From Pocillopora damicornis (Eukaryota): a DNA stretch of 64,000 nucleotides. The DNA lies in NCBI RefSeq assembly GCF_003704095.1, contig NW_020845073.1, forward strand, positions 1,240,001 through 1,304,000, given 5' to 3'. The notes beneath the pieces were generated by a model that was not told the origin of the DNA, searched no databases, and saw nothing but the letters and a program-made list of their open reading frames with translations. Below are positions 51,945-55,789 of the stretch, one piece after another (within the stretch, counting starts at the first letter, position 1; each line of letters starts with the position of its first letter). Position numbers and translations under genes: made by a program.

Positions 51945-54900
51945 CTATTCAATAGTGTAAGCCATAAAGATGAAGTGTGGACTATCTGGACACAATTCGT
52001 GACCTGGCTTCACTGTCTCAAAACCCATGAACATGAAAGTGCGCATCAGACTCACTGCAAAAAGACCAACCAAAAGAAAAAATTATTTATTTACATTTAC
52101 ATACAGTACCCTGCTTGAGAAAGACTTTGAAAATGACTTGAGGATGCCCAAATAGTTAGTTACAAGCGAGAACTGAGTTGAATAAACATTTATATGCTGT
52201 ACAACTGAGCTGAACCCTTTCACTCTCAAGATCTCATCAGTGATTCTCCTTTCTATCTGCCACACAATTTTTATGATGTTAGTTTGGATAATTAATTATT
52301 GGATCAACTTAAGATATTCTACTTGATATTTTTCTTTATTCTTATCACTTGTCTGCTTGATATTGTATTGATATTGTAAGGAGAAATTCTGTCTTGGTCA
52401 CTCATAGAAGTTCAAGGGCTAAAAGAAAGCACAGGCAAATTAGGCCATAACAGTAACATCAACTCTTAGTACAGACAAACAAATAATAATTTTGCGTTTC
52501 TGTTATTATAATTAGAAAATGAGGGAATTTCAGGGTACAGTACGTTCTTTGTGCCCAAGAATTCAAATTACCTCTGTCTTCTCTTTCCTTGAGTAGACCA
52601 ACAAATATGTGAGTGCAGTCAAGATGTTCCTCTGCATACTCCAGCAGTGATACAAAACTAACCAAAACAAAGATTTCTAATAAGTGCCACGAGGTAATGT
52701 TATCTCAGTGCTAGTTTACAATAGGCTAGGCAATAGGCTTGGCAGATCCACCAATGAGTTGTAGTGGTATAGGCTAAGTTACTGCGCGTAAAAAGATTTT
52801 TAGGAGTGTCTTGAAGACCGATGGTTTTTTGACAGCTTAGCAACCCTCACAAAAGCATCTTAAACTCAATTTAGAATGCTTGAATACCTGTAGAGAGGTT
52901 TACAATAATGTTTTTATGATGTGACCAAATAAAGAAAATTTCCCTCAGGCTAATAACTTTAGTTCTTGTACTGACAAGTTCAAAATTTGGCTCTTCCAAT
53001 GCAGAGTTAAGAACCTTTTATTAACCATAACAGACAGAATTAGCCACAATAATGTGAGATTGTACCTTACAACTAAAGAGGAGAGACCTACCACAACTTA
53101 TCTAATTATCAGAGCAAATTCAAACTGCCACAGAAACAAGAAGTAATACATACAGTAGTCAGTATTACATACCACTCTTTGCCTCCAGGAGCAATCTCTC
53201 CATGTGGAACCTCTACATAAAGAAAGCTATTTTGCAACACAGCTCTCCACTTGACCACATCGTGTTCACCACTTTTAAGGCAAAAGCTATAGAGCAGGGA
53301 CTTTGATAGTTGGTCATTGTCACTCTCATTGGCTATTTTGGAATCCTGGTCAAAAACAAAAACATAATACAGTTGAACCTGTATTAAGTGGGACTGTACT
53401 AAGCGGTCACCCACTATTAAGGGTCACTTGTCAAAGTCCCAGATTTTTTTCTCCTTAATCACTGTACTTTTCACCTCTATGAAGCAGTCACCCCTATCAA
53501 ACAGTCATGGTCACTCGCCAGAGAGTCAGGAGATGACTGCAAGTTACTGGAGTTTCAAGAAACCCCAGCCATAATATGAACCTATACATACATGGACAAA
53601 ACTAACTAACTCCTTATCTACACAGGTCCAAAACAAGAAACAATCTCTTCACCTTTCCAAAGCATTTTACTTGTTCACTGATAGCAAACTTGAGCTCAAA
53701 TTCTTGTCATAATACAACTATTGGAGTTTTTCAGTTCCACGCATTGTAGTTTAAAATTCAGGTATATTTCCATAATCTTTACAAAGAGGACAATACAAAT
53801 CAAACTAATCTTAAGCCATTTATAATGAAAATAGGACTGAGTGGAGTCCAATTCCATCTGCAGTACTGTTATACAGTCAAGTATAATGGATCTGTAGTCA
53901 TATGAATGATTTAAGAAATTGAACCATGCTGGGACAAATATCACTTACATTAAAAAGTTTGAGGAAGGATATACCGTCCTCATCATCATCTCCTCCTCCA
54001 CCACCATCTCCTGAACTTCCTGCCTCGTCATAGCGGACATCAGGTATACCAGTCCATCCACTGTCGCAGCTTATAGTTACAATACACTGCTGACTCCCTG
54101 GTCAAATTAATCAAGCAATAGTATTACAAACAAGCAAATTTTGGTGAACAAGATTCAACACTTTTTCAAAACTATTATTTTTGAATTCCAGACTTAAGTT
54201 AAGGAGTCAAATCTGATGACTAACACCTAAAGGTAGTTTTCAGGGGTTCACCCTCAAGGTGAATATTCTTCAAATAAGTTAATAAAAGAAAATTTGAACT
54301 TGCACATAAAAATTCTGAACGGTAATTTATGTATTTAATAATGCAATGACAAAAAATGATACAGGCTTCTTCCAATGTTTGATTTGAGACTTGATAACAC
54401 TTAATAAAGGTCTTGAATATGTTTTCTTTTGATTTAGGATTCCACGCAAACCCTGAATAAAACAAAGGCTGGCTGAAAACAAAGGGCTGTCTGAAAAATA
54501 TAATATTCAACACTGATGATTTAATCTTGTGAAACAAAGGTTCCCGTCTAGTCAAAGGTGCGATGGTACTAATAGTAATGTTTCCAACACAATTTTCGTG
54601 TTTGCAGGGCGAGAATGTCTATGATTCCTCACTTTACACGACAAAGATCTCAAAAATCACACACCAACTGGTTTGAAAATAAAGGCAATTTGCTAGCGGC
54701 ACCAACAAATTCGCTTACATCAAATGCAGCTGCAATGAATACAAATTATTAGCGACAAAATTTTATTATGTAATGAGCTTTGATCACTTGTTATCACTGC
54801 AGCTACGATAAACACACGCATTCGAATACTGAAGTCACTTGACATTAAAATACTTTAAACATTCCTGGAAAAAAAATCGAGCACAAGTGGGCAAGTATCA

Positions 54901-54967
54901 GTTTTATCATAACAAAGTGAATATATGGCTGAGACATACGTAACAACAAAATCTTCCCCACTTACAG
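51945..54967 (-). CDS. OAZ: Ornithine decarboxylase antizyme, expressed by a probable +1 frameshift. Exons: leader ending 54966, 54097-53949, 53345-53173, 52657-52572, 52054-51945
   Basis: ORF2 reads DVRYDEAG..WRAVLQNSFLYVEVP..GGKECFVSLLEYAEEHLDCTHIFVGLLKEREDRVSLMRTFMFMGFETVKPGHELCP..FIFMAYTIE*. It has no usable in-frame AUG upstream of the conserved domain. ORF1 ends TGG TAT ACC TGA T (54051-54039), overlapping the ORF2 GAT GTC in the +1 frame. Confidence 0.92.
53367..53512. mobile_element. Tc1/mariner-type MITE remnant (TA-CAGT end) in an antizyme intron
   Basis: atacagttgaacctgtattaag..aagcggtcaccc..ttaag repeated subunits. Confidence 0.4.
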
Positions 54968-55789
54968 GGCTGTTTGGCGAATTTCCCCGGATGTTTTTGG
55001 TTAGGATGTTGGTTTTCTTTCTTCTTGTGCGGCGAAATTGTTGACAAGTCGCTGCCGAAGCAGACTACTGACGACAACAGCAATAATTAAACGTTTGAGG
55101 GAGAAACTGAATAGGCGATTGCTCCACTAAAGACTCCTGAGCCCCAACAGATCATGGAAGTCGAAAATGTAGACCAGAATGCTTTTGGACATTTGTCAGC
55201 CTTGTTCCCAGGCTTTTTCTGGTGCATTTAAGAATGGGTTTTGAGTGTCGTCTCATATTACAGAAAAGTTATTGCAAAATTAAAATTTTCAAGCCCATTG
55301 TTATGTAGGATTTCAAGCAGTGCAACATCTCACAGAACCAAAAAGGCATTAAGTTTAAAGTGGCTTGAGAGGCTTATACATATCCTCGCTGATCGTCGCT
55401 GTAAATTCAGCCTTCGGAGAAGCATAATAGTACTAGTAATTAGGCTAATAATAGAACTATTAACAATGGTCATAGTACTAGTCTTCTTCTGATTTATTAA
55501 CGAGGAGGAACAATGACCTACGATCAAAACGTAGTTGTACGTTTGGGTCTTAAGCTAATTTTCTTGCAAGACTGAAATCCACGATTGGAAAGGTATAATT
55601 ACTCAGAGGATCGTCATTGTCAACATCATCATCATCATCTCAATTAATTCGGTAAAAGCCGGTTAGGCAACATACCAACCACGTACAAAATGCAAAAGTA
55701 AAAGTTATACACTACAATAAGTACAATTCAGAATAAAAAATGAACTATACAAATTGAAACGCTCCTATTAGCCTAATGAACTGAAGTAA

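Follow-up and report, generated by a model that had tools for sequence, protein, structure and literature searches.

ACC-UGA-U at the antizyme frameshift position of stony corals, and an open, conserved ORF2 frame upstream of it

Among cellular genes, that of antizyme, which restrains polyamine synthesis, provides the textbook example of regulated recoding by +1 frameshifting; the usable codons in the ribosomal peptidyl (P) site are few, and the first open reading frame (ORF1) ends in UGA in ~97% of known cases. Here we describe the ornithine decarboxylase antizyme gene of the coral Pocillopora damicornis, which lies on the minus strand of a 64,000-nucleotide (nt) stretch of contig NW_020845073.1 (positions 1,240,001 to 1,304,000; NCBI RefSeq assembly GCF_003704095.1) that is called the window below and whose own numbering is used throughout. 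At the position where other metazoan antizymes carry UCC-UGA-U, ORF1 of this gene ends in ACC-UGA-U, such that the P-site codon specifies Thr rather than Ser, and the same variant is found in all of the scleractinian sequences collected. Upstream of the site, moreover, the frame of the second open reading frame (ORF2), which encodes antizyme, stays open and its protein sequence is conserved, a more surprising feature than the ACC codon itself.

The 2007 census by Ivanov and Atkins comprises seven P-site codons, ACC not among them, with Cnidaria represented by UCC only (PMC1874602). A full-text literature search for antizyme together with ACC-UGA returned no paper and, since many subscription papers were not searchable, the variant is only probably unreported; the preliminary description of this locus, which did not place ACC among the reported sites, agrees with both results. 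Fixed in a whole animal order, ACC would be a natural eighth antizyme P-site codon.

Compared with metazoan antizyme 1 and its UCC-UGA-U site (rat and human OAZ1, Nematostella), the coral gene belongs to the same family and has its site at the aligned position, and the two share UGA followed by a pyrimidine, the +1 sequence GAU GUC C, a conserved 5' stretch and a UGG-xxx-NCC-UGA context. The coral gene differs in its ACC (Thr) in place of UCC (Ser), in an ORF1 of 5 rather than ~60 codons when counted from AUG, in the absence of a detectable 3' pseudoknot, and in an ORF2 frame that is open and protein-conserved upstream of the site. The fungal CCC-UGA sites of Aspergillus and its relatives are likewise of the NCC-UGA form, derived from UCC-UGA and fixed in a lineage (PMC1874602); however, CCC re-pairs fully on CCU, whereas coral ACC, like UCC, would keep a first-position mismatch. 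CCC also works in mammalian cells (PMC1874602), and no reporter-type test of ACC comparable to that of CCC was found in the literature. The antizyme ORF1 of Hydra, known here from the census paper alone, has 17 codons (PMC1874602). A short ORF1 is an apparent cnidarian trait, with 19 codons in a distant non-scleractinian anthozoan transcript (L016), 15 in Nematostella counted from the first AUG and 19 in the coral counted from a CUG at the exon 1/2 junction, and most stony corals differ from Hydra in that their sole AUG lies 5 codons from the stop. An AUG-less conserved coding stretch in the leader has reportedly been described by Ivanov and coworkers, in 2008 and 2018, as the upstream conserved coding region (uCC) of AZIN1/ODC, where it forms a separate upstream ORF. 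The coral stretch, in contrast, is in frame and continuous with ORF2 and overlaps all of ORF1. For mammalian antizyme 3, a CUG-started extension has been proposed in the ORF1 frame (PMC1874602), whereas the coral extension lies in the ORF2 frame; as far as we found in the literature searched, such an extension has not been described as a second route to antizyme.

The putative shift site and its conservation among corals

The minus strand reads ...CAG TGG ATG GAC TGG TAT ACC TGA T, from which ORF2 continues in the +1 frame as GAT GTC CGC (DVRYDEAGSS...). The preliminary description had taken this gene for an antizyme with Thr ACC as the frame-0 P-site codon and with its UGA at the position of the canonical UCC-UGA-U, and each of these points is borne out. 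ORF2 of a natural transcript contig (L012) matches the Pfam family ODC_AZ (PF02100) with 71.3 bits against a cut-off of 24.2, and the window ORF2, obtained by joining and translating the exons, is identical to it. Homologues of ORF2 are named antizyme in Stylophora, Montipora, Exaiptasia and Nematostella, the nearest named one being that of Stylophora pistillata at 92% identity. The locus is an ornithine decarboxylase antizyme gene. ACC is read in the window sequence and in contigs from three RNA runs, and the UGA falls in the same aligned column as the TCC TGA of Nematostella and L016.

Related coral contigs were gathered by means of fragment proteins and a degenerate DNA pattern. ACC TGA T is present in 14/14 distinct scleractinian-like exon 2 sequences and in six transcript contigs from further runs (L009-L014). 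Nematostella (L015) has TCC TGA C and L016 has TCC TGA T in this column, and the common context at the aligned site is ...TGG xxG GAx TGG TAT NCC TGA YGT CCG. The proteins of two transcripts with ACC (L017 and L019) fall within a clade with 100/99 support that includes those of Stylophora, Oculina, Montipora, Porites and Desmophyllum. This clade takes in both robust and complex corals among those named, and Nematostella and L016 stand across the split. ACC in all corals sampled and UCC in Nematostella and L016 therefore indicate that ACC took the place of UCC within the lineage of stony corals, and as judged from these alignments ACC-UGA-U is a lineage-wide stony-coral trait, arising from a U to A change that has been held since. 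Conservation of the ACC form across Anthozoa, which the preliminary description had proposed to examine, thus holds for the Scleractinia but not for Nematostella or L016, where the site is UCC-UGA.

The overlapping reading frame allows the nature of this constraint to be examined. Across the 14 sequences, the ORF2-frame codon that overlaps ACC is ATA in 11, GTA in two and TTA in one, such that at least two changes of its first base have altered the amino acid, whereas the third base, which supplies the A of ACC, is invariant. A variable first base combined with a fixed third A points to selection on ACC in frame 0. This A lies in a 36-nt cassette in which third bases are invariant at 9/11 degenerate codons, as against 6/33 in the rest of exon 2 (Fisher p = 2.8e-4; 14 scleractinian sequences). 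Exon 2 as a whole is 91-93% identical in nucleotide sequence to related corals, and exon 3 is 77-80% identical. The 5' frameshift stimulators of known antizymes lie where the coral cassette lies (PMC1874602; PMC7297798); the cassette is thus a conserved 5' sequence at the position of known stimulators, with putative activity.

The first AUG of the window mRNA is kept as GGA UGG in 13/14 scleractinian sequences. In four independent transcripts the first AUG is always in frame 0, at 5 codons before the UGA in the window and in L017, 15 in L019 and 19 in L016. Leaders of four transcripts contain 1-2 ATGs where 3.4-4.5 are expected from composition; in 3/4 of them the frame-0 AUG is the sole leader ATG, and L019 has an extra out-of-frame ATG downstream. 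Frame 0 is open from 55000 to the UGA, with ORF2 overlapping in the +1 frame, and it is closed upstream by a TAA at 55003-55001, so ORF1 can have at most 29 codons. A CUG formed across exons 1 and 2 (C54967, T54966, G54097) has G at -3 and G at +4 and lies 19 codons before the UGA. L016 has an AUG at the exact position of this junction CUG, and Nematostella reads ACC CUG G there; by this comparison the CUG is a plausible second candidate for the start of ORF1.

The ORF2 frame upstream of the site

Upstream of the shift site the ORF2 frame extends for ~58 codons, as far as a TAA at 55089-55087, and no AUG occurs in it over this distance. In exon 1 it encodes a conserved ...CFGSDLSTISPHKKKENQHPNQKHPGKFAKQP. 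Homologous proteins have ~200 residues, ~50 more than ORF2 proper, and their additional N-terminal part aligns in corals and sea anemones as ...TISPHKKKEN..NQ..PGK..KQPWSQQCIVTISCDSGWTGIP, followed by DVR.... This N-terminal extension corresponds to exon 1 plus exon 2 of the window in the ORF2 frame (54966-55083 and 54042-54097, minus strand). Its profile, run against 1.84 billion proteins, matched nothing beyond exon fragments and one cluster of anthozoan antizymes, and homologues outside Anthozoa were absent from the result.

Codon alignments of ten taxa were used to calculate the ratio of nonsynonymous to synonymous differences per site (pN/pS) from summed pairwise Nei-Gojobori counts. Upstream variation falls mostly at third positions of the ORF2 frame. 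The pN/pS ratios of the ORF2 frame and frame 0 were 0.27 and 2.98 in the leader upstream of ORF1, 0.17 and 2.51 in the ORF1 overlap, and 0.30 and 0.91 downstream of the UGA. The ORF1 peptide is therefore not conserved as a protein (frame-0 pN/pS of 2.5-3.0), and the low upstream ratios in the ORF2 frame reflect purifying selection on its protein and imply that this frame is translated ahead of the shift site, probably from a non-AUG start.

Where would such translation begin? None of the transcripts examined has an AUG upstream in the ORF2 frame, and ORF2 itself has no in-frame AUG until near its C-terminus. The other corals and L016 have a UUG 2-6 codons before a conserved Cys codon, and in the other corals an in-frame stop is found 1-5 codons upstream of that UUG. 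The upstream near-cognate codons have U at -3 in all species, which is a poor context. Initiation would take place at UUG or CUG near 55075-55083. Public gene models give a single continuous ORF, several of them flagged as partial, and coral and anemone antizymes are thus annotated in public databases as 'partial' continuous ORFs; the flags fit a missing AUG. The Oculina and Montipora models begin with M in the ORF2 frame, and in Oculina, for which the protein model alone was seen, this M is at the position of that UUG. The 'MC' start of the Nematostella model derives from a 7-nt upstream exon spliced into a leader hairpin (L015:3001-3236) and was rejected as a probable prediction artefact because the acceptor is absent in corals. 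An AUG-less, protein-conserved extension that spans all of ORF1 suggests that in anthozoans frameshifting may not be the sole gate to antizyme.

The stem of the leader hairpin, CUGC-UUCG-GCAG in the window, is identical in all anthozoans examined, with UUAG as the loop in Nematostella and CUCG in L016. An invariant stem provides no covariation evidence, and exon 1 as a whole folds with a stability that does not exceed that of shuffled sequences (z = 0.79).

Two possible sources of an upstream AUG were considered and rejected. An alternative AUG-bearing first exon was sought in L010-L014, which contain only intron-like sequence upstream of exon 2. One RNA contig (X15) extends 5' of 55117 by 30 non-genomic letters; as an AUG exon these have no AG acceptor, and an ORF2-frame AUG within them would meet the TAA at 55087-55089. 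The X15 extension is probably the result of a chimeric contig.

Readings of the site and a proposed mechanism

The reading that we favor, with moderate confidence, is that corals use an ACC version of the antizyme +1 site that is functional and specific to them, together with a probable frameshift-independent route from a non-AUG start. Most scanning ribosomes would pass the weak upstream codons and begin in frame 0, at the first AUG or the junction CUG. Since ORF2 offers no AUG of its own frame before its C-terminal end is near, these ribosomes would need a +1 shift at ACC-UGA to make antizyme. When Thr-tRNA occupies ACC in the P site and a slowly read UGA stands in the aminoacyl (A) site, a fraction of ribosomes would move +1 and read GAU GUC CGC into antizyme. 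If an inosine-containing tRNA-Thr moves from ACC to CCU, positions 2 and 3 would stay paired (through G35 and I34) and position 1 would be mismatched, as for tRNA-Ser on UCC. By standard decoding rules, this likeness in re-pairing would place ACC-UGA in the NCC-UGA class together with UCC and CCC. A minority of ribosomes would start upstream in the ORF2 frame at UUG or CUG and produce an N-terminally extended antizyme with no frameshift, and conservation of the extension implies that this long isoform, or the act of translating the extension, would matter. The coral site may also respond to polyamines.

Several observations weigh against this reading. Selection on the upstream part of the ORF2 frame shows that some functional product, at the least, arises independently of the shift, so that the preliminary description, which had antizyme made by frameshifting, is supported by conservation of the site but may not have named the sole route. 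Ribosomes already in the ORF2 frame upstream of 54045, which that description had listed as a refutation, have partial support from this evolutionary evidence. That ribosomes shift at ACC is itself something we infer from sequence. The AUG-started ORF1, at 5 codons, is below the 17-codon minimum of the 2007 census (PMC1874602). In human cells, a saturation screen at the human OAZ1 site gave a wild-type-like +1 signal for a single replacement of UCC, namely UUU (PMC7297798), which implies that ACC may be a weak site outside corals. A 3' stimulator in exon 2 also lacks support: RNAalifold gave -6.65 kcal/mol with zero compensatory pairs, the single-sequence fold of exon 2 was not above shuffles (z = -0.59), and Rfam at E <= 1 returned only two sub-threshold chance matches.

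Could the site have lost its function altogether? One alternative is that corals do not frameshift, that ORF2 is reached only by near-cognate initiation (UUG/CUG) upstream in its own frame, and that the AUG...ACC-UGA mini-ORF is an overlapping, out-of-frame ORF that either survives as a relic of the ancestral site or serves as a decoy or pause for ribosomes past the weak start. This would account for an ORF2 frame that is open from 55083 and is held by equally strong purifying selection on both sides of the UGA, for a frame-0 peptide unconserved as protein, for public models that show one continuous ORF, in two corals beginning with M, and for the result that ACC was below wild-type level as a UCC substitute in the human reporter screen (PMC7297798). 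However, every transcript has its first AUG in frame 0, with no stop until a UGA at the ancestral shift position, and, unlike the variable synonymous sites nearby, the A of ACC, the CCU and the GAU do not change. A relic is expected to decay, yet the site has been kept in lineages on both sides of a strongly supported anthozoan split. The near-cognate starts are moreover in poor context, and without a shift ribosomes that start at the first AUG would be wasted, since ORF2 offers them no in-frame AUG until near its C-terminus. The frame-0 AUG, the invariant A, CCU and GAU, and the suppression of synonymous change argue against a relic but leave room for a pause or decoy role, and we regard this alternative overall as unlikely, though not negligibly so.

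A further explanation is that ACC is a tolerated neutral drift of UCC, synonymous as AUU to AUA in the overlapping frame, at an otherwise ordinary NCC-UGA site. AUU, AUC and AUA are indeed synonymous in the ORF2 frame and correspond to UCC, CCC and ACC in frame 0, UCC and CCC are known natural sites (PMC1874602), and the re-pairing arithmetic would be equal for ACC and UCC. A neutral base should vary, however, and this one is A in 14/14 scleractinian sequences, even where the overlapping codon is GUA, for which any GUN is synonymous, or UUA, for which UUG is synonymous, although merely 34% of degenerate third positions are invariant overall in the same exon 2 set. Neutral drift therefore seems distinctly improbable. 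Finally, an assembly or sequencing error for TCC, which the preliminary description had named as a way in which it could fail, is refuted and has practically no probability left: none of the three RNA runs has a listed difference at the site, an RNA contig that joins exons 1, 2 and 3 (X17 record 13) has zero differing letters in exon 2, and L009-L014 and 13 related coral contigs all read ACC. Because of this RNA support and its presence in 14/14 sequences, ACC-UGA-U is neither an assembly error nor a chance occurrence.

For the functional ACC site with a second, non-AUG route, we tentatively propose an extension that we ourselves consider doubtful. The two routes in anthozoan mRNAs would compete, pausing at ACC-UGA under high polyamine levels could, by queuing, raise the weak upstream initiation, and stony corals would have retuned the site by way of ACC, which is poor in the human context. 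If this were true, an old frameshift site would double as a polyamine-sensing pause element. The ACC site also bears on the open question of whether +1 shifting depends on tRNA re-pairing or on A-site occlusion, in that ACC and UCC would re-pair equally poorly and ACC failed in the human screen.

Gene structure and minor observations

The gene has five RNA-supported exons (Table 1). Splice joints were taken from RNA contigs of three runs from three studies, and all introns have GT..AG ends on the minus strand. The runs in which this DNA occurs bear the labels of coral or marine metagenomes. The 3' untranslated region in exon 5 extends beyond 50950, and exon 5 alone scores 24.9 bits on ODC_AZ, above the 24.2 cut-off. 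Antizyme paralogues were sought by a Pfam scan of the whole assembly, which returned this locus alone.

Table 1 Features of the antizyme gene in the window
Feature	Position	Strand	Evidence or remark
Exon 1, AUG-free 5' leader	54966..55127	-	5' ends of RNA contigs at 55117-55127; splice joint from 54966 to 54097
Candidate near-cognate starts UUG, CUG, UUG	55083-55081, 55080-55078, 55077-55075	-	First codons past the in-frame TAA
Leader hairpin CUGC-UUCG-GCAG	55052..55063	-	8-14 nt downstream of the candidate UUG/CUG starts
Exon 2 (ORF1, putative shift site, start of ORF2 proper)	53949..54097	-	Splice joints 54096/54965 and 53344/53948; 149 nt
Conserved 36-nt cassette through ACC UGA U	54039..54074	-	Synonymous change suppressed in the ORF2 frame
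First mRNA AUG	54055..54057	-	Frame 0, 5 codons ahead of the UGA; ORF1 = MDWYT
P-site codon ACC (Thr), final ORF1 sense codon	54043..54045	-	Window sequence; coral alignment
ORF1 stop UGA	54040..54042	-	+1 codon GAU at 54041-54039; CCT GAT invariant in the scleractinian set
Exon 3 (ORF2)	53173..53345	-	RNA splice joints; homologues
Exon 4 (ORF2)	52572..52657	-	RNA splice joints; ODC_AZ profile positions 45-75
Exon 5, coding part	51945..52054	-	ODC_AZ profile positions 76-114; stop TAG 51947-51945

A G-rich series of GGN codons for Gly, followed by GAU/GAG codons for Asp and Glu (GGGGGDDDED), occupies 53963-54030 on the minus strand, 20-70 nt past the UGA in the 3' direction. This stretch is kept in all anthozoans, and Nematostella has GGGG tracts in it; a role as RNA, for instance as a G-quadruplex, would be conjectural.

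Introns 1, 2 and 3 are covered by low-depth contigs (7-15, compared with 400-1800), consistent with some unspliced RNA or DNA carry-over. Intron-retaining RNA contigs from two runs have an 11-nt deletion relative to the window at 54160 in intron 1. In intron 4, summed contig depth over ~52144-52541 reaches 10^4-10^5 in RNA runs and DNA runs alike, and loose ends and odd joints are numerous there; this high-copy repeat probably represents a short repeat dispersed in the coral genome.

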